A stretch of 64,000 nucleotides of DNA, taken from the IMG/VR virus record IMGVR_UViG_3300042540_001822, positions 124,001-188,000 of that record; one strand, written 5' to 3'. The number at the start of each line of letters is the position of its first letter. The stretch's first letter is position 1. A program made the position numbers and the translations under genes. Shown here piece by piece: positions 10,636 to 51,910 of the stretch. Below the pieces are notes generated by a model that was not told the DNA's origin, did not search any database, and worked only from the letters and a program-made list of their open reading frames with translations.

Positions 10636-10667
10636 AATTTAATTTTGAATAAAAGTAATTGAAAAAA

Positions 10668-11711: not shown

Positions 11712-12200
11712 TTAGCAGTGAATTTTTTGAATCCTTTTAAGATGTCTACCCCCTTCAAAATCAGTTTTTAAAAAAATTTCTATTGATTTTATTGCCTCGA
11801 ACGTAGAAATAAATCTGGCAGGCAAACAAAGTAGATTTGCGTCGTTGTGTTTTCTTGAAAGAGCAGTAATATCAGAGTTCCAGCACAATGCTGCTCTAAC
11901 ATTTGGCCATTTGTTTGCAGTTATTGCAACCCCATTACCAGATCCGCAAATTAAAATTCCAATTCTGTCCGTGTCAATCAATCCTGCAACCCGGTGTGCA
12001 TAGTCTGGATAGTCTGTTGATTCTTGGTGGTAGGTACCTACGTCAATTACCTCATAATCATTTTCGCAAAACCAATCCAAGATTTTTGTTTTCAATTCAA
12101 ATCCTGCATGGTCTGAGCCTATTATGATGGTTTGGATATGATTTGACATGGAAGAAGAATAGATTTTTTTTCTTAATTTTCCATTCTTATATTTAAACAA
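11712..12200 (-). CDS. rpiB: Ribose-5-phosphate isomerase B (true start probably MSNHIQ)
   Basis: GSDHAG, DYPD, GILICGSGNG, ANK, RAAL, RKHNDAN, FEGGRH motifs. Confidence 0.95.
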   Translation of the reverse strand: MFKYKNGKLRKKIYSSSMSNHIQTIIIGSDHAGFELKTKILDWFCENDYEVIDVGTYHQESTDYPDYAHRVAGLIDTDRIGILICGSGNGVAITANKWPNVRAALCWNSDITALSRKHNDANLLCLPARFISTFEAIKSIEIFLKTDFEGGRHLKRIQKIHC

Positions 12201-13011: not shown

Positions 13012-13562
13012 TCAAAACCCCAGGGTCCCAGGCCGTAAGTAACTGAGAAACCTAGGGGTTCAAGAAATGAAATTAATTTTAGATTGTTAATGTGAACTGA
13101 CTCGTAATAAATTTGTTTGATGTCAAATTTTCTCCAGTCCAAACTGTAAAGAATTTGATCGTCGATTCCTTCGGCATCTAACATTAAATAATCTAAATGA
13201 TACAAATCAAATTCTTCTAAAATAGAAGAAAGAGTTCTTGCTGGAACGGAGATCTGAACCACTCTTTCTTTTTGGAGTAATCCGTGTCTTGGCTGGAAAA
13301 AATGATCTTGTGAAATAGATGATAAAGGATAATGTGGTCCATCATCCATGTGAAAAAAGAAAGAAGTTTTTCCCGTTGGTGTTGGATCTGGGACCACTGC
13401 ACAGTCCAAAATAACATGAGGAATTCCAAAATAAGCCTGTGAAATAATCCCGTGGTGAATTTTCAAAGGCTCTGCTAAAACAACTAATTCGGCATTATTT
13501 TCTTTAGCCAATTTAGGTAAATGGTCTTCAGCAGTAGAAGTTCCAACTTGTAAAATTTTCAT
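12990..13562 (-). CDS. FkbM-family SAM-dependent methyltransferase-like protein
   Basis: ILQVG, LVVLAEP, RTLSSIL, LDYLMLDAEG.D, IYYES. Confidence 0.75.
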   Translation of the reverse strand: MKILQVGTSTAEDHLPKLAKENNAELVVLAEPLKIHHGIISQAYFGIPHVILDCAVVPDPTPTGKTSFFFHMDDGPHYPLSSISQDHFFQPRHGLLQKERVVQISVPARTLSSILEEFDLYHLDYLMLDAEGIDDQILYSLDWRKFDIKQIYYESVHINNLKLISFLEPLGFSVTYGLGPWGFDCLAIRP

Positions 13563-13877: not shown

Positions 13878-14390
13878 TTATTTCCAGTCAATTTTAGGAC
13901 AATACTTGTAATAGGTTGCTTTAACCATTTCAACAGTAATATTAGAACTTTTTTCTTCTTTCGGTAGATTTTTCCTCCCCCATTTTCTTTCTTTTCTTTC
14001 TTTTATTTTATCTTGGATGTATTCAATAAACCAAGCACAACCCCAAGTCAAACCTACCGCCCATACAAAAAAACCGTAAATAATTAAATTTTCTAAAATA
14101 GATCCTTTATGTGGTGTGTGCCAAAATAACATAATGGGACTGAGAGCTGCAATTAAAAGCAAAAGTATAAACCAAGAAATGAAACTTATCCAAATTCTAT
14201 TACCAAGTGATTCGTTATACGTATCTTTATCTATAATAACATAAGGAAGGGAAAAAATAAATAGTGGGATTGCGAATACATAAGCTATTACCAATTTCCA
14301 AAAGTATGGACATAAGTTGGTTGGAAGTTCACTTGTTCTGTAAAACCAACGGAAGAGTTTTGCTGAGATTGAGTTTTTGTTGAGTTTCAT
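13878..14390 (-). CDS. Multi-pass membrane protein (NLCPYFW; YYKYCPKIDW)
   Basis: Three hydrophobic segments. Confidence 0.8.
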   Translation of the reverse strand: MKLNKNSISAKLFRWFYRTSELPTNLCPYFWKLVIAYVFAIPLFIFSLPYVIIDKDTYNESLGNRIWISFISWFILLLLIAALSPIMLFWHTPHKGSILENLIIYGFFVWAVGLTWGCAWFIEYIQDKIKERKERKWGRKNLPKEEKSSNITVEMVKATYYKYCPKIDWK

Positions 14391-14761
14391 ACTTTTACAA
14401 GTTTAAATTTTTCACCACCAATTACAATTTCTTTACCTTCGCAAGATTTGGGTCGGTTGTCTTTGATTATACCTTTTGAATTCTCAAAGTAGATTAGATT
14501 ACCTTGAGAATCCCATTCCTGCTTTAACCAATACCCAGTTGAATCCTCAAAGTAGATTCTATTACCTTGAGAATCCCATTCCTTCTTTGCCCAATATTTC
14601 TTTGAATTCTCATAGTAGATTTCATTACCTTGAGAATCGTATTCACTCTTTACCCAACGTTTATTTGAATTCTCAAAGTAGATTTTTTTGCCATTCGTGT
14701 CTAGGATTACCAATGTACCATTGGTCTTGAAATCCCATTTAATTTGTTGTGCGATTGTCAT
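14387..14761 (-). CDS. Beta-repeat family member, 3 internal units, 124 aa
   Basis: xWxKxE(W/Y)DSQGNxIYxE(N/D)S repeats, YD/RHS-like. Confidence 0.9.
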   Translation of the reverse strand: MTIAQQIKWDFKTNGTLVILDTNGKKIYFENSNKRWVKSEYDSQGNEIYYENSKKYWAKKEWDSQGNRIYFEDSTGYWLKQEWDSQGNLIYFENSKGIIKDNRPKSCEGKEIVIGGEKFKLVKV

Positions 14762-15069
14762 ACTTTTACAAGTTTAAATTTTTCACCATCGATTTCTACT
14801 ACTTTATTTTCGCAAGATTTAGGTCGGTTGTCTATGATTTTACCATTTGAATTCTCATAGTAGATTCTATTACCTTGAGAATCCCATTCTCGTTTTGACC
14901 AATATCCATCTGAATCATGATAGTAGGTTTGGTTACCTTGAGAATCGTATTCACACTTTCCCCAATATCCATCTGAATTCTCATAGTAGATTCTATTACC
15001 ATTCTTGTCTTTAATTTCCAAGTAACCGTTGGTCTCAAAGTCCCAGTTGATTTGTTGTCCTATTGTCAT
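14758..15069 (-). CDS. Beta-repeat family member, 2 units, 103 aa
   Basis: Same family motifs. Confidence 0.9.
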   Translation of the reverse strand: MTIGQQINWDFETNGYLEIKDKNGNRIYYENSDGYWGKCEYDSQGNQTYYHDSDGYWSKREWDSQGNRIYYENSNGKIIDNRPKSCENKVVEIDGEKFKLVKV

Positions 15070-15314
15070 ACTTTTACAAGTTTAAATTTTTCACCATCGA
15101 TTTCTACTACTTTGTTTTCACAAGACTTGGGTCGGTTGTCTCTGATTACGCCATATGAATTCTCATAGTAGATTTCTTTTCCTTGGGAATCCCACTCCTT
15201 CTTTGACCAATGTCCATTTGAATTCTCCCAGTAGATTTCTTTACCATTCTTGTCTTTAATTTCCAAGTTACCGTTGGCCTTGAAATCCCATTTGATTTGT
15301 TGTGCGATTGTCAT
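15066..15314 (-). CDS. Beta-repeat family member, 1 unit, 82 aa
   Basis: Same family motifs. Confidence 0.9.
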   Translation of the reverse strand: MTIAQQIKWDFKANGNLEIKDKNGKEIYWENSNGHWSKKEWDSQGKEIYYENSYGVIRDNRPKSCENKVVEIDGEKFKLVKV

Positions 15315-15622
15315 ACTTTTACAAGTTTAAATTTTTCACCATCAATTACGATTTCTTTATTTTCACAAGGCTTGGGTCGGTTGTCTTTGATTACACCACG
15401 TGAATTCTCAAGGTAGATTTCATTCCCTTCAGAATCCCATTCCTCCTTTACCCAATCTCCCTTTGAATCCCCAGAGTAGATACAATAGCCATTAGAATCG
15501 TATTCTTGTTTTGTCCAATACCCATATGAAGCCTCTCGGTAGATTTCTTTACCATTCTTGTCTTTGATTACCAAGGAACCATTGGTTTCAAAGTCCCATT
15601 TGATTTGTTGTGCTATTGTCAT
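15311..15622 (-). CDS. Beta-repeat family member, 2 units, 103 aa
   Basis: Same family motifs. Confidence 0.9.
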   Translation of the reverse strand: MTIAQQIKWDFETNGSLVIKDKNGKEIYREASYGYWTKQEYDSNGYCIYSGDSKGDWVKEEWDSEGNEIYLENSRGVIKDNRPKPCENKEIVIDGEKFKLVKV

Positions 15623-16014
15623 ACTTTTACAAGTTTAAATTTTTCACCACCAATTACAATTTCTTTGTTTTCACAGGATTTGGGTCGGTAGTCTACGATT
15701 GCACCATCTGAATCCTCGTGGTAGATTATATTACCTTTAGAATCGTATTCCCACTTTCTCCAATCTCCCTTTGAATTCTCCCAGTAGATTAATTTACCTT
15801 GAGAATCGTATTCACACTTTACCCAAAATCCATCTGAATTCTCATAGTAGATTAGATTGCCTTGAGAATCCATTTCATACTTTCTCCAAGTCCCATGTGA
15901 ATCCTCAAAGTAGATTAGGTTGTCATTCTTGTCTCGGATTATCAAGTCACCATTGGTCTTGAAATCCCATTTGATTTGTCGTGCTATTGTTTCCATAATT
16001 TTTTTAATCTTCAA
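15619..16014 (-). CDS. Beta-repeat family member, 3 units (start possibly METIARQ)
   Basis: Same family motifs. Confidence 0.9.
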   Translation of the reverse strand: MKIKKIMETIARQIKWDFKTNGDLIIRDKNDNLIYFEDSHGTWRKYEMDSQGNLIYYENSDGFWVKCEYDSQGKLIYWENSKGDWRKWEYDSKGNIIYHEDSDGAIVDYRPKSCENKEIVIGGEKFKLVKV

Positions 16015-16540
16015 ACAGATTTTCTAAATATCGACACATTTCCCCGAGTTGATGAGCTTGTCCTTCAACAAATCCAAGACTAGTTAAGAAATGGTCATTT
16101 TCTTTTTTATACATGTCAAACATACGGCTACCAGTCATTTTAGAGTATTGAACATTAGCTATTCTATCACAAAGTTTAACAAACACAGCTTCTTTGAAGT
16201 TACGAATTCCCTCGTAGTATTTGTCATTTGCACGTTCCTTACGGTTCTTACCCTTTTCATTGGTACATGCATATATGATATCCGCTGTAAATAGTCCAAG
16301 ATTTTCCTTTACATCATTATAAGAAACTCTTGTGTCTTCGATTAAATCGTGACCGTATGCGGCTAGTAGAACCATATCTCTCCATGCTGTTTCTCCATCA
16401 TTTAAATTGGGGATTAATTCTATGAACTTCTCTGCCACCTTAGCAACCATTCGCAGATGGAACTCATAAGGCAAATATGCGTCGTACATATGGTTTGTAG
16501 ATTCGTGTTGCTTAAGAATCCATTTGATTTTTTCATTCAT
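16004..16540 (-). CDS. HD-domain hydrolase, RelA/SpoT hydrolase-like (SAH/Mesh1-type)
   Basis: PYEFHLRMV, AAYGHDLIEDT, VKLCDRIANV. Confidence 0.85.
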   Translation of the reverse strand: MNEKIKWILKQHESTNHMYDAYLPYEFHLRMVAKVAEKFIELIPNLNDGETAWRDMVLLAAYGHDLIEDTRVSYNDVKENLGLFTADIIYACTNEKGKNRKERANDKYYEGIRNFKEAVFVKLCDRIANVQYSKMTGSRMFDMYKKENDHFLTSLGFVEGQAHQLGEMCRYLENLFED

Positions 16541-16593
16541 ATATTCGATTTCTTTTGTGAAATTAAAATTAAGGTAGGACGTTATTATTATTG

Positions 16594-18036
16594 TTAACCC
16601 TCTGATTTTTTGCTACTAGCCAAACCGTTCAACATTGATAAAATGTTTTTACCCTCCTCAGTTTGTTTTAGTCCTTCGAGTAAACCGTTAATTTGTGAAG
16701 CTCCTTTGGACGTGAAAAGGTCTGAAAGCTTTCCAATGCCGGATTGTACGTCTCCACTGTTAATGAGAAGCTTGAGATCAGCTGCGGATAAGGCTTTTGC
16801 CATAGATTCGTACTGTGCAACCCCGACCACTTGGCTCACCTCCACCTCTTTTACCCGAATCAAGTACTCTTGATAAGGTTTGTTTTCCCCGATCTCTTTG
16901 GCCAAAGTGGTCTGTGCAGAAACGCTGGCCAATTCCATCGCCTTTCTTGATTCAGCCTCTGATATACCTTTGGCCTTAATAACATCTGCCTCTGCAGAAC
17001 CAACAGTTTTGGTAGCCTCTGCCTCTTTACGTTTTGCTTCCAGTGCAGCTGATGCTTCTGTTTCAATACGGTATTTTTCGGCCATAGCACGAATTTCTGT
17101 CTTCTGTTTTTCTTGTTCTGCAGTGATGATCTCACGTTCTCTGTCGATCTCGGCTTGCTTGACTTGATTTACCTTTATAACTTCCATCTCTTGCTCGGCA
17201 GTCATTCTTTGTGATTTTGCGATCTCCGAGATAGATTCTTGTTCTGCAATTCCTGTGCGTTTCTTTGACTCTGCTTTGGCTATTCCGATGGCCTGTTGAG
17301 ATTGAGCCTGTGCCTCCCCTGCGATCTTTTCTGTTTCTGCAGTGGTGACGTCAATTTCTTTTCTGGCCTCTAGCTCTGCTTGTTTTGCCATCTTGTTGTT
17401 TTTCGCAACTTCAGTTCTTGATTCCATGTCTATGGCTGACATTCTTTTTGCCATGATTTGGTGGATGACCTGGGATCCGTCTGCGTCTCTTACGTCCATC
17501 AATTCAATGCTTTTGATAGCTTCTACCCCCCAGTTTTGCAAATCATTGTTGACCGCCTCTGTGAACTGCTTACCGAAAATGGATCTTTCCTCCATGATTT
17601 CTTCCAATTTTGATTTGGCCAAAATCGAACGGACTGCTCCTTGAACTACATTTTCTAACTGTCCTTTAAGTTCTTCAAATGATTCAACCTTTTGTGCTGC
17701 AACGTTTGTGTCAGATATATGAAAGAAAGCCTTTACGTCAACCACGAAAGGAACACGATCTTTATCATAGGCCTCATATCGTTTTAAATCGATGTCGAAG
17801 TTGCTAACTGGCAAAACACGTTTTGATACACCGAAGAAAGGAAGCCAACTTGGCCATTCATAGTATACGTTGGATTGTTTATTGGTTCCATATGAGACCG
17901 TCTGTTTTCCACGTTGAACAATGTGTACCACGTTGGTCGGCACGATTCGGCGAAGTGAAACAACGTAAATCAGAATGGAAATCCCGATGATGGTTGGTAA
18001 CGATAGAGCTACCATGGAGAGAATTGATAGAAACAT
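16594..18036 (-). CDS. SPFH/band-7 (flotillin-like) membrane protein
   Basis: N-terminal TM; VPTNVVHIV; DKDRVPFVVDVKAFFHI; GAVRSILA; long AE-rich coiled coil. Confidence 0.9.
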   Translation of the reverse strand: MFLSILSMVALSLPTIIGISILIYVVSLRRIVPTNVVHIVQRGKQTVSYGTNKQSNVYYEWPSWLPFFGVSKRVLPVSNFDIDLKRYEAYDKDRVPFVVDVKAFFHISDTNVAAQKVESFEELKGQLENVVQGAVRSILAKSKLEEIMEERSIFGKQFTEAVNNDLQNWGVEAIKSIELMDVRDADGSQVIHQIMAKRMSAIDMESRTEVAKNNKMAKQAELEARKEIDVTTAETEKIAGEAQAQSQQAIGIAKAESKKRTGIAEQESISEIAKSQRMTAEQEMEVIKVNQVKQAEIDREREIITAEQEKQKTEIRAMAEKYRIETEASAALEAKRKEAEATKTVGSAEADVIKAKGISEAESRKAMELASVSAQTTLAKEIGENKPYQEYLIRVKEVEVSQVVGVAQYESMAKALSAADLKLLINSGDVQSGIGKLSDLFTSKGASQINGLLEGLKQTEEGKNILSMLNGLASSKKSEG

Positions 18037-18091
18037 TTTTTTTGGGTTTAAATTGGTTTATGAAATTGGTTTTTGGATTTTAAAATTTAAA

Positions 18092-18739
18092 TTAAGAAAG
18101 AGAATTTGGAAGGTATAACAGAGTTGGATTCTTCTTTTGAATGTCGATATCTGGATACTTTTTTTTAAATTCCATCACATCAAACTTTTTTGTTATTAAA
18201 TGATGGCCGTTTTTCGTTGGAATAATTGCTTCTATCTTCGGACCCACTTTATGACCGATAGGAAATCCAGCTTCATCAAAGTCAACTTTGGTAATGGGTT
18301 GACAGGAATACTCCAGATGTGCCATCATAAGGGGGGATGGTGTTTGTGATCCATCTACATCCACAATCCATCTTTTCTCATGAGTTTGCATTTGACCAAC
18401 AACAGAATCAAAAAGATTTTTTTGGTTTGGTTGACCATTTCGAATTCTTTCAGCCAAGGAAACCATCATGTTTAAAGAAACATCTTTGTGATTTTGTTTC
18501 TGAACATGAATATAAGCTCTTGCTTTGAACATCTCGCACAATTGTTTTATCTCTTCATATCTTTGGTCGAGATGGTCAACACTTTCTATACAGTAGGTCT
18601 TGATTGTTCTGACCGACTGGTGGTTGTCTTTTTCACCCTCTGGTTGGTCTTTCTTCCTTTTGAAAACATACAACATGTAGAAATCTCCAGATTTCTCAAA
18701 ATTAAGAAGAGGTTTGATTAGAGGAAGATTGTCTATCAT
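18092..18739 (-). CDS. Prim-pol / archaeo-eukaryotic primase-like protein (start moved to MIDNLP)
   Basis: WIVDVD (hhhDhD) and IPTKNGHHLI (sxH) match AEP motifs I and II; canonical promoter just upstream of 18739. Confidence 0.6.
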   Translation of the reverse strand: MIDNLPLIKPLLNFEKSGDFYMLYVFKRKKDQPEGEKDNHQSVRTIKTYCIESVDHLDQRYEEIKQLCEMFKARAYIHVQKQNHKDVSLNMMVSLAERIRNGQPNQKNLFDSVVGQMQTHEKRWIVDVDGSQTPSPLMMAHLEYSCQPITKVDFDEAGFPIGHKVGPKIEAIIPTKNGHHLITKKFDVMEFKKKYPDIDIQKKNPTLLYLPNSLS

Positions 18740-18756
18740 TTGCTGTAAGTTGTAGC

Positions 18757-18789
18757 AAATATACGAAAAAGGATTCGATAAAAAACAAA
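18757..18789 (-). promoter_or_regulatory. Bacteroidota-type housekeeping sigma promoter (-33 TTTG / -7 TAnnTTTG)
   Basis: Minus strand TTTG (18789-18786), 21-nt spacer, TATATTTG (18764-18757). Confidence 0.6.
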
Positions 18790-18817
18790 AACCCAAATTT
18801 TTTTTGGGTTTTTTGTT
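18783..18817 (-). terminator. Hairpin, probable intrinsic terminator downstream of the tRNA-like RNA
   Basis: aaaaacccaaa-ttttt-tttgggttttt inverted repeat with A/T tails. Confidence 0.65.
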
Positions 18818-18824
18818 ATCTTTG

Positions 18825-18946
18825 CCAGAAGGGCGGGGTTCGAACCCGCGGCTCGCCATTACCTCGACCTTAGCGTGCATTCGATCTCGACTTTGCTTGC
18901 GCTTTCAGTGGGTTTCCTTGTAGCACGTTGTTACCCACACCTCCTG
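18825..18946 (-). ncRNA. 122-nt tRNA-like non-coding RNA without a canonical anticodon arm
   Basis: 7-bp acceptor stem CAGGAGG/CCTTCTG; T-arm GCGGG-TTCGAAC-CCCGC; TGGGT/ACCCA stem at D-arm position; GC-rich intergenic island; no CCA. Confidence 0.7.
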
Positions 18947-18950
18947 TTTT

Positions 18951-19178
18951 TTAGTCGTCGTTTCTTTCTCTGATTGAACCTGATGTTGAATCCGGAGGGA
19001 TTGCACCCCAAATTTTTGCAAAATTTTTGTCTTCTATTACACGGGCAATGAAGTCAGATTTTGAAAGCGGATCATTGGTTGTCATCATCCAGGCGTTGTA
19101 ATATTTCTGGTAAACAAGATCAATGTTAGATTTTTCTTCTCCGAAAGAAATTTGTTGTTTTTGTGAATTTGAAATCAT
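18951..19178 (-). CDS. Small protein with an MNNEK-like core
   Basis: VYQKYY...LSKSDFIARVIEDKNFAKIWG aligns with VYERYW...LTKQDFINKCKTDSEFSERWG. Confidence 0.7.
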   Translation of the reverse strand: MISNSQKQQISFGEEKSNIDLVYQKYYNAWMMTTNDPLSKSDFIARVIEDKNFAKIWGAIPPDSTSGSIRERNDD

Positions 19179-19191
19179 AAGAATTTTTTAT

Positions 19192-19929
19192 TTAAGAAAT
19201 TTCTCCTACAGATAGTTTTCCTTTAACATCAATAAGAAATTTACCAATTTCTAAAGCATCTGCCAAATAATATTTTCCACCCATATACTTTCTCATGTGA
19301 CCAAGATTTAAATCCTTAACTTGGGTGTGACCCACAATTTGAATAAAATTCTTTTTGATCCAATAATTTGAATCTGACCTCCTCTTTTTATTCGAAGCTA
19401 GTAGAGCGGGTATACGAATCCAAACAGGAGATTGTGTTACATCATTACCGTAAGAATTCCAACCAGAGAAACAAAAAGCTTTAGGTCGGAATACGAACAT
19501 TTCGTTTATCTTTTCAACCAGATTCCAACAATCCCAGCCATTTATTCCAAATGTATTTTCCATCCAAATGTGGCTGACCCCTGCGTGTGTACAAAGATAT
19601 CTATCGAAAGAGAATGACATTTGGAATTGAGGTAAGTTTTCGGACAGAACTGTGGAAATATCGAATTGTAAACCCGGTTGAAACCCTGAGTATGTTTCAC
19701 CAACGTGCATATAGTGAAGGTCGTGATTACCTACGAGTAAAACTACTTCCTTGTCACTTGACTTTTTAAATTCAACTATTTCCTTGAAGTTGTGTAATTG
19801 GTCTATGCCAGGAATATCAAAAGAATCAAAGTAATCCCCTAAGAATACAATTCTATCTGGATCCTCCTGCTGAATAATTTTTTTCCAGATGGATCTTCCG
19901 TGAATATCACCTATAAAAACTGTTTTCAT
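19192..19929 (-). CDS. Calcineurin-like metallophosphoesterase
   Basis: GDIHG, GDYFD, GNHD, THAG, GHT. Confidence 0.92.
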   Translation of the reverse strand: MKTVFIGDIHGRSIWKKIIQQEDPDRIVFLGDYFDSFDIPGIDQLHNFKEIVEFKKSSDKEVVLLVGNHDLHYMHVGETYSGFQPGLQFDISTVLSENLPQFQMSFSFDRYLCTHAGVSHIWMENTFGINGWDCWNLVEKINEMFVFRPKAFCFSGWNSYGNDVTQSPVWIRIPALLASNKKRRSDSNYWIKKNFIQIVGHTQVKDLNLGHMRKYMGGKYYLADALEIGKFLIDVKGKLSVGEIS

Positions 19930-19970
19930 TTAATTGTAAATGTGAATAATTATGGTTCTGTTATTTCTCA

Positions 19971-20429
19971 TTATGATTCTATTAGTTGTGCAACGATGTT
20001 CTTAACAGTTCCAATATCTGCTCTTCCTTGGAATCTTTTATTGAACTCACCGATAGTTTTTCCTTGAAGAGCTTGCGGATTTTTGATTGTATCGCTGAAT
20101 CCTTTCATGATCTCGATAAGAGAATCTGCGATTTCTTGGTCTGACATTTGAGCAGGCATGTACCTTCTTAAGACACACGCTTCATCACATTCTTTGCGGG
20201 CAAGTTCATCTCGTCCAGCATCCTCAAAGATCTTTTGAGATTCTTCTCTCTGCTTGATGGCTTTCACCAAAACTTTAACGACTTCTTCATCTTTTAAGTT
20301 TTGCGAAAACCCCGCTTTCTCGGCCTCGGTGATTTTTGCTTTTAAGCTGCTTAAAGCAGACTTCGCATTTTCATCTTTGGCTTTCATAGCCACCACGAAA
20401 TCTTTTTGAATTTGTTCTTTGAGTGTCAT
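19971..20429 (-). CDS. GatB/YqeY-domain protein
   Basis: MTLKEQIQKDFVVAMKAKD...IKQREES...GRDELA.KE...YMP.QMS. Confidence 0.9.
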   Translation of the reverse strand: MTLKEQIQKDFVVAMKAKDENAKSALSSLKAKITEAEKAGFSQNLKDEEVVKVLVKAIKQREESQKIFEDAGRDELARKECDEACVLRRYMPAQMSDQEIADSLIEIMKGFSDTIKNPQALQGKTIGEFNKRFQGRADIGTVKNIVAQLIES

Positions 20430-20430
20430 A

Positions 20431-21531
20431 CTATTTTTCGTTTTTAAGAAGGAACTTGTTGCTAATTGCCTTGAAAGAAATGGTAGTGTCCATACTACGA
20501 ATGACCACTCCTTCCCGTTCAGTATTGGGATTTAGAACTGATTTTCCTTCTGCTTGTTGTAGAAGTTCTTCGATGGTGTCTGGTAGAAGAAACTCAATCC
20601 CGAGAATTGGCACGGTTTCGAATCCCAATAACTTCATTATGTTGATAAAATCTCGAAGGTTTAGTCTTTCCTGCTTATCAATGTCAAAAGCATTGTAGAA
20701 ACGAACGGTATGACCTTTGAGCTTGTAAGGATTCTTTTGAATTCCTTCTCCGATCAATTCTCCTTGGATGCAAATGTTAAGACCGGTTGCTAGTAACTTT
20801 TTCTTAATGTCCATTTCACGAGCTACTTTCCAGAAAGTGTTTTCCTGCTTCGGTCTTTCCAAGCCATCTTCACACATTACAGTGCCAGGTACAAAATCTC
20901 CGGGGTCAGCAAGTTCCAGGTTGCGAGAGCAGACCCCAAATTCACCGTCCTTGATGTAGAATGTAGCAGAACTCCCATCCAACTTTTCAGTTGCATAGAA
21001 CTGGTGTTTGCTGGAGAACTTCCATTCCTCGTATTCCTTGGTTAGATTCTGCACCCTCTCTTCATCGGTCTTACGGATAAAAGATGGGAAGTAGCCTTTG
21101 ACCTTGCCGGCCAGCTCGGCAGGAACTGGCGGCTCGTACTTGACAATGTTCAACATTTCTGTAACATCTAGTCCTTCGAACCAGCCCATATCCAGGTTAG
21201 GAGTGCTACGTTTGTAGATCGCATAGGAATCTGCCAATGGTAGGATGAGACCTTGTGATACTTGCCCGCGAAGTTTGATCGTCTTCAATCGAAATCCTTC
21301 AGATCCGTCAGACATTTTTTTATACGAGCTCTTCCGAAGAAACTCAAACTCTGGCTCAATTGGCAAGTAAGAGTCGATCTCGCAATAGACTACAAGATCT
21401 CCCTCTTTGTGGCCTACGTTTTTGCCAACCACCACTTGCCAGGAATTGATGATTGCCAGTTCAATGGAGTCTGCTCCTTCGATTGGTCGAATCTCACGGA
21501 TTCTTTGTATGCTTGCTAATTTTCTTTCCAT
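20431..21531 (-). CDS. ATP-dependent RNA ligase (DRB0094/Rnl5-like) with N-terminal OB-like domain
   Basis: RKLASIQRI...ADSIE; TEKLDGSS (motif I), QGELIG, FYNAFD, REGVV, FKAISNKFL. Confidence 0.92.
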   Translation of the reverse strand: MERKLASIQRIREIRPIEGADSIELAIINSWQVVVGKNVGHKEGDLVVYCEIDSYLPIEPEFEFLRKSSYKKMSDGSEGFRLKTIKLRGQVSQGLILPLADSYAIYKRSTPNLDMGWFEGLDVTEMLNIVKYEPPVPAELAGKVKGYFPSFIRKTDEERVQNLTKEYEEWKFSSKHQFYATEKLDGSSATFYIKDGEFGVCSRNLELADPGDFVPGTVMCEDGLERPKQENTFWKVAREMDIKKKLLATGLNICIQGELIGEGIQKNPYKLKGHTVRFYNAFDIDKQERLNLRDFINIMKLLGFETVPILGIEFLLPDTIEELLQQAEGKSVLNPNTEREGVVIRSMDTTISFKAISNKFLLKNEK

Positions 21532-21533
21532 GG

Positions 21534-21791
21534 TTAAATTGGATTTGTTAGTTGTCTTGTTACAATTCGGCTATCTTCATCAGGACGGGACTCGATTCCC
21601 AAAGAAACGGACTTCCCGTAACATTTGGCAACAACAATTGGGTCTCCGTATATGGGGTCAAAATCTGATCTAAAGGAGACGAACCCGGCACCATCACATT
21701 TTCGATTATATCCTACCATATCCTTGTGTTGAATTGCCGCAGAAAAAACTATTGCGCTTCCGTCCACAATTACGTATTTTGCTTCGTACAT
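21534..21791 (-). CDS. Hypothetical protein
   Basis: ORF track. Confidence 0.75.
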   Translation of the reverse strand: MYEAKYVIVDGSAIVFSAAIQHKDMVGYNRKCDGAGFVSFRSDFDPIYGDPIVVAKCYGKSVSLGIESRPDEDSRIVTRQLTNPI

Positions 21792-21867
21792 AAATATTTA
21801 AATTTTATTAGAACAACAATAATTTCATATTCTTATTGAACGCTAAATTAATAATTTATTTCCAATT

Positions 21868-22281
21868 TCATTCGAATTTTTCCCGAAAATTGTGAATTTT
21901 TTCAAAGTAAAATTGTACAGGTGTACCAGTTTCAATAACCAATCCATAACGTTTGGCAAACTTGTATTGGGTGCTATATTCATTGAGAGAATTCACGAAT
22001 TGCTTGATATTTGACCTGAACTCTTCCACAGTAAATGAGTTCTTTTGGATATTACAACTGGGGCAGGCTGGATTAAAATTTTCTAAAATTTCATTTTCTG
22101 GATTCCTACATGTTCCCTTGTTTACAAACTTACCTTTTTTTCTGTCCCATTTACTATCTCTGACAATTGGTTGAACATGGTCTGCATGCCAACTTTTTGT
22201 TAAATTACATCCACAATATGCACATTTCCCGCCATACTTCTCAAAAATTTTGATCCTATCAGATTTTTTCATCCATTTCAA
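21868..22281 (-). CDS. HNH endonuclease
   Basis: CAYCG...DHVQP...NPACPSCNIQK. Confidence 0.9.
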   Translation of the reverse strand: MKWMKKSDRIKIFEKYGGKCAYCGCNLTKSWHADHVQPIVRDSKWDRKKGKFVNKGTCRNPENEILENFNPACPSCNIQKNSFTVEEFRSNIKQFVNSLNEYSTQYKFAKRYGLVIETGTPVQFYFEKIHNFREKFE

Positions 22282-22633
22282 TCTGTCTGATTTTGTGAAT
22301 GGCCTCCATAGGCATTGTCTTCACACAATATTCAACGATATGTTTGAATTCTTCCATAGGAAAAACTAGAAGTTCTAAGGAGAAGACTTTTGAATCTCGA
22401 TGTTCTTCTACCTGTAGGTGTTTACTAACCTTACCTACGATCTGTTCGGACAATCGTTGGGTTATTTCTTTGTATACAATTTTCTCAAAATCCACAGACG
22501 AATGTTCCAAGATATCTTTGGACAAAGTATGTTGACATTTGTGATGTGCATTTTCTAACATTAACGCTTGTTTGGCGGTTTGTAGAGATCTGACGAGTTC
22601 TCTAGAAACATGATCGAAATCTTGTGTGTTCAT
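22259..22633 (-). CDS. Hypothetical protein
   Basis: ORF track. Confidence 0.75.
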   Translation of the reverse strand: MNTQDFDHVSRELVRSLQTAKQALMLENAHHKCQHTLSKDILEHSSVDFEKIVYKEITQRLSEQIVGKVSKHLQVEEHRDSKVFSLELLVFPMEEFKHIVEYCVKTMPMEAIHKIRQIEMDEKI

Positions 22634-22637
22634 TTTT

Positions 22638-23339
22638 TTAGGAATTTATTTGAACGTCAAATATGGTATTTTTGTGGTAATCTGATACATAACAACCCAT
22701 AACGAGCAAAAATGTTTTTTCTCCGGGTATTCCAAAAAAACACCTCGAATCATTGGCGGAAAAGATTTCCAATTCAGATATTCCAACGAACAAAAGATTA
22801 TCAATCAATTCCCTTGTAGTCTTCATAGATAAGTAAACTCCATCCACATTAAAGTAATGATTTTCTGGTAAGTGGTAATGTCCAGTTTCCTCCGTGCCTG
22901 AGGGTATTTCACCTTCACCATCACATTTTTCACAATCAGATTCCGAACCACAACAGTCACACTCAATAGTTCCAAATCCATCACACTCAGAGCATTCTAT
23001 GTATTTTTCCGAAAATTCTGGAATTAATTTGATTTTTTCAAAAACTTCTTCAAAATCCTTGATTTTAATTCTACCGATAGGTCGGGGAACACCCTCGTAA
23101 AATTCGGAGAATTTCTCAACAACTGGAAGTGCCTTGATCCCTTCTGTATCCGAATAAATGTATCTGTTTTCAAAATTTTTATAATCAGGATCGTAGGTCC
23201 AAATTAATTTGTAAGAATCCGTAGCACAGACCCATCCATCGTCAAAACAGGTTGGTTTCAACATTTGTGTTCTAAGGATGCTATCCTTAGAACACCAGGA
23301 TTCAATGAACGTTTGATATTTTGGATGTTCTCTAAGCAT
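22638..23339 (-). CDS. Hypothetical protein with a DnaJ-type zinc-finger insert
   Basis: CSECDGFG...CDCCG...CEKCDGEG. Confidence 0.8.
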   Translation of the reverse strand: MLREHPKYQTFIESWCSKDSILRTQMLKPTCFDDGWVCATDSYKLIWTYDPDYKNFENRYIYSDTEGIKALPVVEKFSEFYEGVPRPIGRIKIKDFEEVFEKIKLIPEFSEKYIECSECDGFGTIECDCCGSESDCEKCDGEGEIPSGTEETGHYHLPENHYFNVDGVYLSMKTTRELIDNLLFVGISELEIFSANDSRCFFGIPGEKTFLLVMGCYVSDYHKNTIFDVQINS

Positions 23340-23535
23340 TATTTTTTTTATTTAGAAAAGAAACTAAGAAAAAAATACCGAAGAAAATGGTAAAACCCCA
23401 TCGGTGAGGTTCAATAGGACTATTGAACTTAAACTGACTAGTTGCGTAGGCGCCTAGCATTAAACTACAAATAAAGAATAGGAACAAGAAGAAGTATTTT
23501 TTCATTGGTTTTTTTTACAAATATACAGATAAATC

Positions 23536-23991
23536 TCAAACAAAGTGTGGAATATTCACTCGAACACAAGATTGTGGTTGACCCTCGTTCATCCAAAAAT
23601 TGTTAATGTAGCCCATAATGTTGGCGGATCCAATTGGGTTGGCCGAATGGGTGTAAACTAAGGGAAAAACGATACCAGATGATTTTTTTTCTGACCTACT
23701 TTCTTGAGTAATGTAATTGTCAAGATAGTGATTGACCAACCACTTAGCACAATCCATTCCCGTCTTTTCAAGGATGTTATTGTAATCCAATTTGTAGTTT
23801 GGACTCACGTTATTGAAATATTCATTCATCGCTGTATCATCCAAATCGTGATCCAAAGAAATAAGTTCAATATTTTCCAAACCCGTATTCGTGACAGTTT
23901 CCACGAATTGTTCGTAGTTCCTAACAACCACCCAATTTTCATCTTTGGGTGTCCTAACGTCATCTAAGTAAATTTGTTTTTTCATTTTCAA
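23536..23991 (-). CDS. Cyclic-phosphate-processing receiver-like domain protein
   Basis: IYLDDVRTP, ISLDHDL, GMDCAKWL, HSANPIG. Confidence 0.8.
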   Translation of the reverse strand: MKMKKQIYLDDVRTPKDENWVVVRNYEQFVETVTNTGLENIELISLDHDLDDTAMNEYFNNVSPNYKLDYNNILEKTGMDCAKWLVNHYLDNYITQESRSEKKSSGIVFPLVYTHSANPIGSANIMGYINNFWMNEGQPQSCVRVNIPHFV

Positions 23992-23997
23992 TTTTTT

Positions 23998-24240
23998 TTA
24001 AAGCCACTTCACGACGGATCCCCAAACGGAATCTATAGAGTTAAAGAAAACTCGGTGATTTCCATTTCCTAGGGTTTGGGGTATGAACTCGAATTTAAAA
24101 AACCCCCTTATATAGAGGAATCCGATTTGTTTGTGCATATAGAAACCTCCCTGAGTGAATTGTGGGGTTTCAATTTCAACATATGATCGACCTAGGATAA
24201 AATCGTACAATTTAGAAAAAAACAGCAAGAATAATTTCAT
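23998..24240 (-). CDS. Hypothetical protein
   Basis: ORF track. Confidence 0.6.
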   Translation of the reverse strand: MKLFLLFFSKLYDFILGRSYVEIETPQFTQGGFYMHKQIGFLYIRGFFKFEFIPQTLGNGNHRVFFNSIDSVWGSVVKWL

Positions 24241-24485
24241 AGATTGATGTAAGTTGTTTTTTTGATGCTCTCTCCTATTTTTTCTTTTTGATTTTCTTTA
24301 AAAAGTTCAATTACATCTTCGGCTTGTTTTTGGGTGGGGTATATGTGTCTAGACTTATCACTTGTTGATGTTGTGTGAGAATCCGAAATTATATTTTCCC
24401 ATGATTCCCATTCCCAAAATTTAACTTGTGGAGTATATCCCATCTCGCCAGAGTTTTTTTCCTCTACCATAATTCTGTATTTCAT
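24237..24485 (-). CDS. Hypothetical protein
   Basis: ORF track. Confidence 0.7.
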   Translation of the reverse strand: MKYRIMVEEKNSGEMGYTPQVKFWEWESWENIISDSHTTSTSDKSRHIYPTQKQAEDVIELFKENQKEKIGESIKKTTYINL

Positions 24486-25117
24486 TGTTTAGTTTGTTTG
24501 ATTAAAGTTCTATTCAATTTTCCATAGTTTGATTCACCGTCAAAAGCTCTACCAATACGGTACAAATGTTTAGGTGATAATCCAAAGTAACCATCACAAT
24601 GATAAAATTTATCCATTTGTTCTGGAAGCATATCAGAGTCATCATCTAAAATTGCATAATCCTCAACTTCAGGATTTTTATCTAACCATTGCTGTATTTC
24701 TTCTCCCCTCATACCAAACCCCCTTCCAGTAATCCCAACAAAAGTTCCCTCATTAAATCCAAAATGTACCAAAGCATCTTCCCACCACTCTGGAATTAAT
24801 TCTTTTTTCTTACCAAAATGATGTCTCCAAACAGATGAAACACAAATTTTAGTTCCAGTTTCATTACAAAAATTAGAAAGCCATTTCCATTTTTGTGGAC
24901 AAGTTTCTCCAATCAACCTTTTAAGCTGAAATTCGTAGGTGTAGTAAATATCGGGTGTTTTGTGATTTGCATAACTCACAGGTTTTGATTTGATACCTAA
25001 AAACTTTCTGATTAAGTAGTAGTAAGTCCTGGGTTTCAACCACCTTTTTTTGTGTCGGTTCTCGTAAAAAACTTCAGAGTTCATAACCCCATCAATATCT
25101 AAAAATATAACTTTCAT
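24482..25117 (-). CDS. HAD phosphatase of the Swiss-Army-knife RNA-repair type
   Basis: VIFLDIDGVMN, ICVSSVWR, RGEEIQQWL, YAILDDDSDM. Confidence 0.82.
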   Translation of the reverse strand: MKVIFLDIDGVMNSEVFYENRHKKRWLKPRTYYYLIRKFLGIKSKPVSYANHKTPDIYYTYEFQLKRLIGETCPQKWKWLSNFCNETGTKICVSSVWRHHFGKKKELIPEWWEDALVHFGFNEGTFVGITGRGFGMRGEEIQQWLDKNPEVEDYAILDDDSDMLPEQMDKFYHCDGYFGLSPKHLYRIGRAFDGESNYGKLNRTLIKQTKQ

Positions 25118-25425
25118 ACTTTTACAAGTTTAAAATTTTCGCCATCGATTAGGATTTCTTTGTTTTCGCAAGACTTAGGTCGGTTGTCTATGATTAGACC
25201 ACCTGAATCCTCAAAGTAGATTTTATTACCTTGAGAATCGTATTCTCGTTTAGCCCAAACTCCATCTGAATCCTCAACGTAGATTAGATTGCCTTGAGAA
25301 TCATATTCACACTTTTCCCAATATCCATTTAAATGCTCATAATAGATTTCATTACCATTCTTGTCTCGGATTACCAAGAGACCATTGGTCTTGAAGTTCC
25401 ATTTAATTTTTTGTGCGATTGTCAT
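25114..25425 (-). CDS. Beta-repeat family member, 103 aa
   Basis: Family motifs. Confidence 0.9.
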   Translation of the reverse strand: MTIAQKIKWNFKTNGLLVIRDKNGNEIYYEHLNGYWEKCEYDSQGNLIYVEDSDGVWAKREYDSQGNKIYFEDSGGLIIDNRPKSCENKEILIDGENFKLVKV

Positions 25426-25874
25426 ACTTTCACGAGTTTAAATTTTTCACCACCAATTAGGATTTCTTTGTTTTCACAAGGCTTGGGTCGGTAGTCTATG
25501 ATTTCACCATATGAATTCTCATAGTAGATTACATTACCATTCTTGTCTTTGATTTCCTTTAAGTTACCGTTGGCCTTGAAGTTCCATTTGACACTGGCCT
25601 TGAAGTTCCATTTGGCACAGGGTTTAGGTCGATCGTCTCTGATTTGGCCAACTGAATTTTCAAAGTAGATTACATTGCCTTGAGAATCCCATTCTCGTTT
25701 TGACCAATACCCATTTGAATCCTCCAAGTAGATTTGATTACCTTGAGAATCCCGTTCATACTTTTCCCAAAACCTATTTGAATCCTCAAAGTAGATTAGA
25801 TTATCATTCTTGTCTTGGATGTTCAAGCATCCATTGGTCTCAAAATCCCATTTGATTTGTTGTGCTATTGTCAT
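25422..25874 (-). CDS. Beta-repeat family member, chimeric, 150 aa (partial second copy fused in frame)
   Basis: RPKPCAKWNFKASVKWNFKANGNL...; 24-bp tandem repeat at 25571-25618. Confidence 0.88.
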   Translation of the reverse strand: MTIAQQIKWDFETNGCLNIQDKNDNLIYFEDSNRFWEKYERDSQGNQIYLEDSNGYWSKREWDSQGNVIYFENSVGQIRDDRPKPCAKWNFKASVKWNFKANGNLKEIKDKNGNVIYYENSYGEIIDYRPKPCENKEILIGGEKFKLVKV

Positions 25875-26185
25875 ACTTTCACGAGTTTAAATTTTTCACC
25901 ATCGATTTCTACTACTTTGTTTTCACAGGGTTTGGGTCGTTTGTCTTTGATTACACCTTTTGAATTCTCATAGTAGATTTCTTTACCTTGAGAATCCCAT
26001 TCTTGTTTTTCCCAATATCCATCTGAATTCTCATAGTAGATTAATTTTTCTTCAGAATTGTATTCATGCCTGTCCCAACCTCCCGTATTTTCAAAGTAGA
26101 TTAGATTACCATTCTTGTCTCGGATTTCCAAGACACCGTTGGTCTTGAAATCCCATTTGATTTGTTGTGCTATTGTCTGTATCAT
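25871..26185 (-). CDS. Beta-repeat family member, 104 aa
   Basis: Family motifs. Confidence 0.9.
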   Translation of the reverse strand: MIQTIAQQIKWDFKTNGVLEIRDKNGNLIYFENTGGWDRHEYNSEEKLIYYENSDGYWEKQEWDSQGKEIYYENSKGVIKDKRPKPCENKVVEIDGEKFKLVKV

Positions 26186-26523
26186 ACTTTTACAAGTTTA
26201 TATTTTCCACCAGGTGCAAACATAGAAAAAAGACCTAAGCCTTTAAATTCTACTACTTTACCTTCACAGGGCTTGGGTCGGCTGTCTATGATTTCACCAT
26301 ATGAATTCTCATAGTAGATTACTTTTCCTTCAGAATCCAGTTCCCACTTTCTCCAAGTCCCATGTGAATACTCCAAGTAGATCAATTTACCTTGAGAATC
26401 CCATTCATACTTTTCCCAAACTCCATCTGAATTCTCCAGGTAGATTGGTTTACCATTCTTGTCTCGGATTACCAAGAGACCATTGGTCTTGAAATCCCAT
26501 TTGATTTGCTGTGCTATCGTCAT
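26182..26523 (-). CDS. Beta-repeat family member, 113 aa, with C-cap insertion (GLGLFSMFAP)
   Basis: Family motifs. Confidence 0.9.
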   Translation of the reverse strand: MTIAQQIKWDFKTNGLLVIRDKNGKPIYLENSDGVWEKYEWDSQGKLIYLEYSHGTWRKWELDSEGKVIYYENSYGEIIDSRPKPCEGKVVEFKGLGLFSMFAPGGKYKLVKV

Positions 26524-26828
26524 ACTTTCACGAGTTTAAATTTTTCACCACCAAATTCTACTATCTTACCTTCACAAGACTTAGGTCGTTTGTCTTTAAT
26601 TAGACCATCTGAATTCTCATAATAGATTTCATTGCCTTCAGAATCGTATTCATGCTTTCTCCAATATCCCATTGAATTCTCACAGTAGATTTCTTTGCCT
26701 TTAGAATTCCGTTCCCACTTTGCCCAATATCCATCTAAATCCTCAAAGTAGATTATTTTACCATTCTTGTCTAGGATATCCAAGTCACCATTAGTGAAGT
26801 CCCATTTGATTTGTTGTGCTATTGTCAT
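26520..26828 (-). CDS. Beta-repeat family member, 102 aa
   Basis: Family motifs. Confidence 0.9.
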   Translation of the reverse strand: MTIAQQIKWDFTNGDLDILDKNGKIIYFEDLDGYWAKWERNSKGKEIYCENSMGYWRKHEYDSEGNEIYYENSDGLIKDKRPKSCEGKIVEFGGEKFKLVKV

Positions 26829-27076
26829 ACTTTCACTAGTTTATATTTTTCACCTTCAAATTCTACTATCTTACCTTCACAGGGCTTGGGTCGTTTGTCT
26901 ATGATTCTACCAAATGAATTCTCCCTGTAGATTAGATTGCCTTGAGAATCGTATTCGCTCTTTTCCCAAACCCTATTTGAATCCTCCCAGTAGATTAGTT
27001 TACCATTATTGTCTTTGATTCTCAATTCATCATTGGTCCTGAAATCCCATTTGATTTGTTGTGCTACTGTTTTCAT
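26825..27076 (-). CDS. Beta-repeat family member, 83 aa, 1 unit
   Basis: Family motifs. Confidence 0.9.
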   Translation of the reverse strand: MKTVAQQIKWDFRTNDELRIKDNNGKLIYWEDSNRVWEKSEYDSQGNLIYRENSFGRIIDKRPKPCEGKIVEFEGEKYKLVKV

Positions 27077-27384
27077 ACTTTTACAAGTTTAAATTTTTCA
27101 CCACCGATTAGGATTTCTTTGTTTTCACAAGATTTGGGTCGTTTGTCTGCGATTACACCATTTGAATCCTCACAGTAGATTACATTACCTTGAGAATCGA
27201 ATTCATACTTTGCCCAAAGTCCTTTTGAATCCTCCATGTAGATTAGATTGTCTTGAGAATCGTATTCACGCTTTGCCCAAAATCCACTTGAAGTCTCAAA
27301 GTAGATTAGGGAATCATTCTTGTCTCGGATTTGCAAGACGCCATTGGTCTTGAAATCCCACTTGATTTGTTGTGCTATTGTCAT
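27073..27384 (-). CDS. Beta-repeat family member, 103 aa
   Basis: Family motifs. Confidence 0.9.
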   Translation of the reverse strand: MTIAQQIKWDFKTNGVLQIRDKNDSLIYFETSSGFWAKREYDSQDNLIYMEDSKGLWAKYEFDSQGNVIYCEDSNGVIADKRPKSCENKEILIGGEKFKLVKV

Positions 27385-27388
27385 ACTT

Positions 27389-28000
27389 TCATTTTTTATT
27401 TTGTAATTCTTCTAAATAATCCTGAAGATCTGATGAGGTCATATATGTTTTACTAAAATCAGGTTCAATTTTCTTAATTTGTTTAATTGTGTCTTCTTTT
27501 TTACCAAGTCTGTAATAATGAGCCTCAATAGCATCTGCTAAGTCTTGAATATATTTTGGTGCAGCAACCGAGATTCTTAAATCATACCAAGACCATTTTG
27601 TTTTATAGTCTGTGAATGTTATTCCTTTGGTTAGTTTTCTATGCAAATTATGTAGTGTTCTATTACGAACTCTTACAATTGATTTATCATTACCAAATAC
27701 CTGAAGAAATCTAAGAAACCAACGAGGACACCACCAAGGTTTTGCTTCATAATCCATGGCCAAAACTAATGGGACCATAGCTTTATTATAGTATTTGTCA
27801 TCAGGTACAGAACCTAAATAACCATACTTTTGGGAAAAGTTTTTGGGAAAGAATATGAAACAAATATCACTCCACTTTAAATCACGAGTATAAATTATTC
27901 CTTTCTTTCTTCCTTTCCAAAATAGTAGAGATTGTCCAAAGTCTTTGACTTTATCAATAAGCGGACGATTGTCCTTAATGTAAAATTTACTTTTTTTCAT
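27389..28000 (-). CDS. Hypothetical protein (KPWWCPRWFLRFL)
   Basis: ORF track. Confidence 0.8.
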   Translation of the reverse strand: MKKSKFYIKDNRPLIDKVKDFGQSLLFWKGRKKGIIYTRDLKWSDICFIFFPKNFSQKYGYLGSVPDDKYYNKAMVPLVLAMDYEAKPWWCPRWFLRFLQVFGNDKSIVRVRNRTLHNLHRKLTKGITFTDYKTKWSWYDLRISVAAPKYIQDLADAIEAHYYRLGKKEDTIKQIKKIEPDFSKTYMTSSDLQDYLEELQNKK

Positions 28001-50342: not shown

Positions 50343-50364
50343 TTTCAATTATTTAAAATTTTTG

Positions 50365-51906: not shown

Positions 51907-51910
51907 GTTG

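Follow-up and report, generated by a model that had tools for sequence, protein, structure and literature searches.

YD repeats are otherwise known solely from the walls of large shells that encapsulate toxins, that is, the Rhs effectors of type VI secretion systems (T6SS), the TcB/TcC components and the teneurins, all of which exceed 1000 amino acids (aa). The position of the YD motif, at the transition from strand to turn, has been described, and short Rhs proteins with 2-16 repeats adjoin full Rhs loci (10.1101/2024.02.26.582050). Here we describe a family of phage proteins of only 80-150 aa in which one to three YD repeats stand free. The genes lie in two tandem arrays in a 64-kb stretch of DNA (hereafter the window) of the 219-kb IMG/VR contig UViG_3300042540_001822, which belongs to a jumbo phage. 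In the arrays, each hairpin keeps a constant scaffold and varies at six fixed positions, where amino acid replacement apparently outruns silent change.

The central sheet of OspA and its engineered self-assembly mimics, which were found by Foldseek, resemble the phage proteins in that consecutive hairpins form a flat antiparallel sheet, exposed to solvent and fitted with caps. However, OspA is a surface lipoprotein with globular caps and has no sequence relation to them. The repeat-variable diresidues (RVDs) of transcription activator-like effectors (TALEs), the leucine-rich-repeat cassettes of lamprey variable lymphocyte receptors (VLRs), and the ankyrin and MORN expansions of pox- and giant viruses are repertoires with code-like hypervariable positions. 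By analogy, they share with the phage arrays a conserved scaffold on which diversity is focused at fixed sites, tandem repeats that grow and shrink in number through recombination, and presumed roles in host interaction. They differ in fold and in the domain of life of the host, and they are long repeat arrays whereas the phage units sit in separate tiny genes. The closest evolutionary analogy that we found is with the esaG/tsaI arrays of the type VII secretion system, tandem non-identical immunity genes among which recombination takes place and whose presumed counterparts are polymorphic antagonists (PMC9484751). Unlike the phage proteins, their products are bacterial immunity proteins with unrelated folds and known toxin partners.

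All twelve open reading frames (ORFs) named in the original prediction are present, co-oriented on the minus strand, and adjacent genes in an array share 4-nt overlaps. They are as follows, with the evidence for each in brackets (HMM, hidden Markov model; AF2, AlphaFold2; TRF, Tandem Repeats Finder).

14387..14761, minus strand: mini YD-repeat gene, 124 aa, three W-units, last of array 1 (HMM, E=1e-72; AF2 model)
14758..15069, minus strand: mini YD-repeat gene, 103 aa, two units, array 1 (alignment, HMM)
15066..15314, minus strand: mini YD-repeat gene, 82 aa, one unit, array 1 (alignment, HMM)
15311..15622, minus strand: mini YD-repeat gene, 103 aa, two units, array 1 (alignment, HMM)
15619..16014, minus strand: mini YD-repeat gene, three units, first of array 1; 125 aa from ATG at 15996 or 131 aa from TTG at 16014 (passes TIGR01643)
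25114..25425, minus strand: mini YD-repeat gene, 103 aa, two units, last of array 2; stop overlapping the HAD_SAK_2 start (alignment, HMM)
25422..25874, minus strand: in-frame fusion of two family genes, 150 aa, array 2 (alignment, TRF)
25871..26185, minus strand: mini YD-repeat gene, 104 aa, two units, one with a 1-residue deletion, array 2 (alignment)
26182..26523, minus strand: mini YD-repeat gene, 113 aa, two units, 10-aa insertion in the C-cap, array 2 (alignment)
26520..26828, minus strand: mini YD-repeat gene, 102 aa, two units, array 2 (alignment)
26825..27076, minus strand: mini YD-repeat gene, 83 aa, one unit, array 2 (alignment)
27073..27384, minus strand: mini YD-repeat gene, 103 aa, two units, first of array 2 (alignment)

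An HMM built from the twelve proteins recovers exactly these twelve in the window. Their alignment bears out a common N-cap and a common C-cap. The protein consists of a degenerate repeat as N-cap, one to three canonical 21-aa hairpins, a terminal half-unit ending in D-x-R-P-K, and beyond it a short C-terminal beta-hairpin tail of about 25-30 aa. The predicted range of one to three units was correct, but the lengths do not step strictly through 82, 103 and 124 aa, since proteins of 83, 102, 104, 113, 125/131 and 150 aa also occur. In the 150-aa fusion, the first partner has lost the C-cap hairpin and the second retains a duplicated N-cap remnant; the gene also carries a 24-nt tandem duplication at 25571-25618, detected by TRF. 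The same program found a 63-nt period in each multi-unit gene and a period of 245-308 nt at the level of the genes. No N-terminal hydrophobic segment was visible when the sequences were read by eye, which agrees with the predicted lack of a signal peptide, and the proteins are probably cytoplasmic. Their net charge is -5 to +3, mostly acidic, and 12-16% of their residues are aromatic. Within most of the multi-unit genes, plus-strand antisense ORFs of 55-84 aa with a repeated motif of their own were observed (for example 14476-14730, 14847-15014, 15771-15962, 25960-26148, 26301-26492 and 27162-27353). Most likely they are a mechanical by-product of a conserved repeat that has no stops in that frame.

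The whole phage has at least 17 family genes, because a third array of five (9627-11239 in L003) lies on the same contig, about 64 kb beyond the low-coordinate end of the window. Fifteen of the 17 copies are intact single ORFs with strong scaffold constraint, one is the in-frame fusion, and one is N-terminally truncated. The third-array gene at 10423-10686 starts with TTG and has no N-cap, and it may be a truncated copy.

Profile and fold matches identify the 21-aa unit as a YD (Rhs) repeat, an identity absent from the original prediction. The product of the 15619 gene scores 27 bits with NCBIfam TIGR01643 (YD_repeat_2x), above the cut-off of 15.8, which two other window paralogues missed. Pfam RHS_repeat (PF05593) gave only E=0.1 on the window genes, and 13 of 90 longer relatives match it, the best at 1.7e-18. 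When the PDB was searched with a profile of the twelve, the top sequence match was an Rhs protein (E=5.6e-5), and in the alignment W-x-K-x-E-Y-D-S-Q-G-N falls on the Rhs core R-[FY]-x-Y-D-x-x-G-R. The AF2 model consists entirely of beta-hairpins with a predicted local distance difference test (pLDDT) score of 86.6, as expected from the predicted beta-sheet fold. In Foldseek it best matches the Rhs shells of T6SS, the YD shells of teneurins and the BC components of Tc, and after these the OspA single-layer sheet; for 7q97, 8cp6, 8qjc, teneurin and 4igl, E ranges from 2e-5 to 1e-3 and the query template-modelling score reaches 0.61. The 63-nt period, the secondary structure assigned to the AF2 model by DSSP and the Foldseek matches together give a hairpin of about 21 residues with YD at the strand-to-turn transition, and a glycine follows three residues later, as in Rhs, TcB/TcC and teneurin repeats.

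Other assignments were not obtained. The window proteins have no significant family in Pfam, PHROGs or PADLOC. No Pfam MORN or MORN_2 (YwqK-type) match was found at E<1, and the fold resemblance to viral MORN proteins ranked low. Choline-, glucan- and cell-wall-binding repeats stayed below cut-off (Choline_bind_3, E=0.56; glucan_65_rpt, 18.7 versus 147.7 bits; endolysin PHROGs, E>=1e-3). The model of the RHS core (NF041261) gave 20 bits against a cut-off of 2000, and the proteins are 82-150 aa long versus more than 1000 aa for shells. With one to three hairpins per protein, a shell cannot be formed. The alignment of the twelve contains neither the DPxGL autoproteolysis motif nor a toxin domain, and the window's neighbour genes include no PAAR, VgrG or Tc domains. 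Thus these phage-encoded proteins, which also lack an evident export signal, are not Rhs toxins or fragments thereof. They also differ from Rhs repeats in their invariant W-x-K-x-E and in position 14, which is hypervariable here and aromatic in the aligned Rhs repeats.

Variability was measured per position over 33 units from the 17 paralogues, numbered x1-I2-Y3-x4-E5-x6-S7-x8-G9-x10-W11-x12-K13-x14-E15-Y16-D17-S18-Q19-G20-N21. Eleven positions (2, 3, 5, 7, 9, 11, 13, 15, 17, 18 and 20) are invariant or nearly so, and positions 1, 4, 8, 10, 12 and 14 are hypervariable with 2.6-2.9 bits each. The per-position entropies thus bear out the predicted hypervariability at fixed alternating positions. 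The residues at the variable positions are rich in Y, R, L and E, and position 4 is F, Y or W in 22 of the 33 units.

The DNA is partitioned in the same way. Scaffold codons are near-identical over the 33 units, synonymous sites included (ATC 32/33, TAC 32/33, GAG 30/33, TCA 31/33, GAA 31/33, GAT 30/33, TCT 30/33). ATC, TAC and GAG differ from the synonyms that an AT-rich genome would favour, an expectation from composition and not from a codon-usage count. The variable codons differ in their first two bases; the third is almost fixed at positions 1, 8, 10 and 12 (position 10 has T in 33/33 units, and position 12 has A in 32/33) and varies as well at positions 4 and 14. The caps display the same codon pattern as the units. 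Synonymous diversity is uneven over the unit: K13 (AAG/AAA), G9 and G20 vary silently, and hardly any silent change is seen at I2, S7 and D17 or in the third base of codons 1, 10 and 12.

The ratio of nonsynonymous to synonymous change (dN/dS, or omega) was estimated by Nei-Gojobori counting. Over all pairs, dN at the variable codons is 0.97 against a global dS of 0.31. With 16 disjoint nearest-neighbour pairs, omega at these codons is 3.1 (bootstrap 95% confidence interval, 2.2-5.0), above 1 as predicted, and scaffold omega is 0.1. Since the ORFs are intact and the scaffold is under this constraint, the family is functional. The window sites were picked after seeing the data, so that the same site list was applied to other expanded lineages, where the pre-defined sites gave omega of 2.3-2.4 (L016) and 2.8-3.3 (L022). 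The scaffolds of these two lineages use different synonymous codons (ATT, TCC, NNG), which indicates that homogenisation took place within each genome and that the expansions were independent. In the expanded arrays, fixed surface positions therefore seem to diversify faster than silent sites change, which we take as apparent positive selection on the codon counts.

Copy number of the arrays differs between samples: a contig from another sample (L075) has only five genes in place of the seven of array 2. Two of these five are chimeras, the third combining 26520-26828 with 26182-26523 and the fourth 25871-26185 with 25422-25874, and outside the joins both are identical to their parents. The chimeric junctions overlap by microhomologies of 10 and 18 nt. 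The smallest k-mers normally used by assemblers are longer than this, so the chimeras are real products of unequal recombination and not mis-joins. The nearest relatives of the N- and C-parts of each gene differ and cross the three arrays, giving a mosaic, and many metagenomic contigs end inside the array. Array 2 is 99.9-100% identical in eight contigs from different samples, with only four differences, all synonymous. The genes evolve as a concerted multigene family, in which the scaffold is homogenised and six codons per hairpin are diversified, and unequal recombination at short microhomologies in the scaffold fuses, deletes and reshuffles them.

The family extends far beyond this phage. 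A HMMER scan of 1.84 billion representative proteins gave 3,874 clusters at E<=1e-3 and 102 at <=1e-30. Among the best 150 of these, 86 have up to 200 aa and one to four units. There are 63 loci in IMG/VR, most of them single-copy; multi-copy loci are L016 (seven genes), L022 and L009 (five each), L021 (four) and L037 (three). Across the family the constant part comprises the N-terminal T-I-A-Q-Q-(L/I), the hairpins and the end G-x-I-x-D-N-R-P-K, and the W-x-K-x-E signature is conserved across phages. The C-terminal 25-30 residues have been exchanged between lineages; they are a beta-hairpin tail in the window and elsewhere helical or helix-turn-helix (HTH)-like tails, among others. Only one of 50,697 GenBank phage records has a homologue, gp42 of Verrucomicrobia phage P8625 (AKA60293.1, hypothetical protein). 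Like the window genes, gp42 is small (152 aa, four W-units plus a terminal unit) and ends in the same C-terminal hairpin tail. Unlike them, it has a different N-terminus and is the sole copy in its phage, whose genome is 33 kb long, where it is flanked by a helicase gene and a primase/helicase gene. When 185,579 species genomes were scanned for narrow motifs, which reach close relatives only, no true relative was found; the single bacterial-genome match was a chance motif match in a LysM protein and was rejected. A Cu_amine_oxidN1 domain is present in some distant relatives, which are bacterial proteins. As far as tested, the family is phage-restricted and almost confined to uncultured phages. 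Two distant relatives in phage-like contigs are true single-ORF fusions, with HAD_SAK_1 (P0093) and with an HD domain (P0137). Five or six modules in one long ORF were observed at 2541-4814 of L065 (P0001) and in P0002, P0003, P0005 and P0010, from other phage-like, Asn-rich contigs. Each of these modules is a helical N-domain of about 50 aa followed by two to five YD hairpins and a D-N-R-P end.

How the variable positions would lie on the sheet was considered from the DSSP limits of the AF2 model, in which unit positions 1-6 and 11-16 are strands and 7-10 and 17-21 are loops. The turn at x8-G9, mostly N-G or D-G, fits a tight two-residue turn, and for D-S-Q-G the fitting type is a 3:5 turn that has a glycine bulge. 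Both turn types lead to mutually consistent pairings, 6:11, 4:13 and 2:15 within a unit and 16:1', 14:3' and 12:5' with the next. On this model, one face would carry I2, x4, N/D6, W11, K13 and E15, and the other x1, Y3, E5, S7, x10, x12, x14 and Y/W16, with x8 at the hairpin tip. The prediction of a single diversified face is thus upheld in part: x1, x10, x12 and x14 would share a face, but x4 would lie on the W/K/E face, x8 at the tip, and the shared face would be striped by conserved Y3, E5 and Y16. Because the variable positions are interleaved with conserved Tyr and Glu residues of the partner strand, the diversified face would be striped, not purely variable.

We propose that the arrays are a putative repertoire of cytoplasmic binders, whose paralogues match different forms of a partner that evolves fast; host proteins in phage-host conflict would be the most plausible choice. 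We hold this reading tentatively and rate it a little short of probable. Each protein would be a capped single-layer beta-sheet, far too short for an Rhs shell. The invariant face of W11, K13, E15 and I2 would stabilise the sheet or contact a constant partner, and on the opposite face x1, x10, x12 and x14, between the stripes of Y3 and E5, would form the variable binding surface together with x8 at the tip. Each paralogue may then recognise a different variant of the partner. The likeliest partners would be host proteins in phage-host conflict, bound as inhibitors or adaptors, and the proteins would be expressed with early or accessory genes.

Several points weigh against a repertoire of binders. 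Most phages have a single copy, so that a repertoire is not the general mode of the family. The older arrays L009 and L021, with dS of 0.5-1.6, give omega near 1, as expected from saturation of dS. Omega comes from simple counting on recombining paralogues, ignores recombination, is set against a synonymous diversity that is itself heterogeneous, and used sites that were chosen post hoc in the window. The face assignment rests on DSSP strand limits and turn-type rules, not on coordinates, and it places the variable site x4, mostly F/Y/W, on the conserved face. PADLOC and anti-defence annotation found nothing for the window proteins, and in the literature searched we found no paper on small phage YD-repeat proteins.

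The main rival explanation is neutral variability. All copies would share a single conserved function, exerted by the W/K/E face or by the caps (for example, binding of one constant partner, or gene dosage), the six positions would be unconstrained and solvent-exposed, and gene conversion would homogenise everything else and so lower dS artificially. The unusually uniform synonymous sites of the scaffold suggest conversion or recent amplification, and omega near 1 in the older arrays and the majority of single-copy phages also fit. However, conversion tracts would homogenise the variable codons too, which lie only 3-6 nt from scaffold codons, and the variable codons themselves combine a fixed third base with first and second bases that approach saturation. 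Moreover, omega exceeds 2 in two independently expanded lineages, and for the second of them the sites had been pre-defined. We therefore consider neutral variability unlikely, though it deserves serious weight.

Genes around the arrays include the following.

12244-13011, minus strand: DnaA_C-HTH protein, which travels with YD genes between unrelated contigs
13878..14390, minus strand: membrane protein phrog_944 (PHROG match), directly downstream of array 1 with a 4-nt overlap
16004..16540, minus strand: HD phosphohydrolase (phrog_990, E=1e-21), directly upstream of array 1
24482..25117, minus strand: HAD_SAK_2, an RNA-repair type HAD (E=4e-20), directly downstream of array 2
27389..28000, minus strand: uncharacterised gene for a 203-aa protein, directly upstream of array 2

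Between the two arrays lies a block of 8.5 kb (16004-25117). Besides the HD phosphohydrolase and HAD_SAK_2 it encodes a flotillin/SPFH protein, a metallophosphoesterase, YqeY, an RNA ligase that has a PHA02142 OB domain, an HNH protein and cREC_REC. The HD gene leads into array 1, as array 2 does into the HAD gene. As direct repeats flanking the block, the arrays could allow it to be deleted or duplicated by recombination. The flotillin of the block is 70% identical to that of a 634-kb uncultured phage (LR745206.1). The membrane protein phrog_944 likewise recurs with YD genes in contigs that are otherwise unrelated, and a 70%-identical homologue adjoins the YD genes in L027/L028. The 203-aa protein occurs with 60-95% identity in eight otherwise unrelated phage loci, in most of which a YD gene is adjacent or at most two genes away. 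It has a strongly conserved core around P-W-W-C-P-R-W-F-L-R-F-L and no match in Pfam, PHROGs, PADLOC, PDB or GenBank phages, and its single-sequence AF2 model reached pLDDT 45. A universal two-gene module, in which this gene would be homologous to the upstream neighbour in small phages, was rejected (hhalign probability 0.1). Around the third array, none of ten neighbouring genes had a Pfam match. In small phages the family gene lies among DnaB, primosomal, single-stranded-DNA-binding protein (SSB) and exonuclease genes, that is, in replication/recombination modules. This placement with replication or accessory genes rather than structural genes suggests early expression.

It is quite improbable that the proteins are virion-associated or surface-acting accessories that bind carbohydrates or receptors, such as decoration proteins or adhesins, with the tail docking to the particle and an aromatic-rich face binding glycans. 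Such a role would fit the aromatic content and the weak resemblance, below threshold, to hairpin repeats that bind choline, glucan or cell walls and to endolysin PHROGs. A conserved scaffold with hypervariable segments is also the logic of the T-even gp38 adhesins. However, the neighbours of the small-phage gene are helicase, primosomal, SSB and exonuclease genes, not structural ones, neither array in the window adjoins a gene that matches a structural protein, and no signal peptide is visible.

The block between the arrays is relevant to another alternative, in which the repeats would read nucleic acids by a residue code, like those of TALE, PUF or PPR proteins, each hairpin contacting RNA bases with its variable residues, and guide the neighbouring or fused HD and HAD RNA-repair enzymes to particular damaged tRNAs. 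As in TALEs, the repeat DNA is near-identical and variation is limited to a few codons, the HD and HAD_SAK_2 genes adjoin the arrays, and P0093 and P0137 are fused to domains of these types. The RNA-repair neighbourhood pointed out in the original prediction is really there, but the link is not general: HD, HAD, ligase or cREC genes lie within 10 kb in none of the other approximately 60 phage loci. In addition, the proteins are mostly acidic and have only one to three repeats, and no YD repeat is known to bind nucleic acid. We regard a nucleic-acid code as very doubtful.

Origin as Rhs-derived fragments, either orphan Rhs tips or toxin/immunity cassettes captured by phages, would account for the YD repeats and recalls the short Rhs proteins beside full Rhs loci (10.1101/2024.02.26.582050), but it is scarcely credible given the missing DPxGL motif and toxin domain, a tail of only about 25-30 aa, the absence of PAAR, VgrG or Tc neighbours, the lack of a true relative in the 185,579 genomes scanned with narrow motifs, and the distinct W-x-K-x-E signature kept across phages. 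Targeted hypermutation by a diversity-generating retroelement or a similar mechanism is superficially suggested by the NNT/NNA variable codons with their fixed third base, which resemble the variable repeats of such elements. It is effectively refuted, since the changes are not specific to A (adenine is invariant at many sites, and where sites vary the majority base is not A), array 2 is 99.9-100% identical across samples, and no template/variable repeat pair was found, although reverse transcriptase was not systematically searched for.

The rest of the window is that of a phage genome with every long ORF on the minus strand and a GC content of about 34%, and a near-identical 231-kb contig was found in another sample. 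Other features of the window are as follows.

11712-12200, minus strand: ribose-5-phosphate isomerase B, auxiliary-metabolism-like
12990-13562, minus strand: FkbM-type methyltransferase, auxiliary-metabolism-like
34308-35369, minus strand: glutamine synthetase homologue, auxiliary-metabolism-like (Pfam families of the identical gene in L067)
50364-50449, minus strand: tRNA-Ser(UGA)
51908-52347, minus strand: tmRNA (Rfam RF00023, 67 bits; 22-residue tag by ARAGORN)

Returning to a repertoire of binders, a more specific form of it can be outlined, which we offer as a possibility on the unlikely side. The YD hairpin may be a minimal evolvable binder scaffold with about five specificity positions per hairpin, shuffled at microhomologies and held in accordion arrays, each paralogue of which would act on a different polymorphic immune or toxin protein of the host, by neutralising or redirecting it.

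In conclusion, the repeat type is known, but the literature searched did not describe this architecture, a family restricted to phages, codons that vary as in a library, or such dynamics of arrays. The family comprises thousands of clusters and is hardly seen in cultured phages. The combination of scaffold identity at the nucleotide level, focal hypervariability with dN/dS above 1, independent expansions and copy-number change is unusual for phage genes and suggests a function in an arms race. Should host defence proteins be the targets, the arrays would represent a new anti-defence strategy, in which a repertoire takes the place of a single inhibitor. Otherwise, the proteins would still be a new minimal beta-sheet scaffold whose natural sequence tolerance is already mapped for each position. 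If the arrays are indeed a library, they would be the prokaryotic-virus counterpart of the VLR, TALE and ankyrin repertoires and would provide a small ready-made scaffold for protein engineering.

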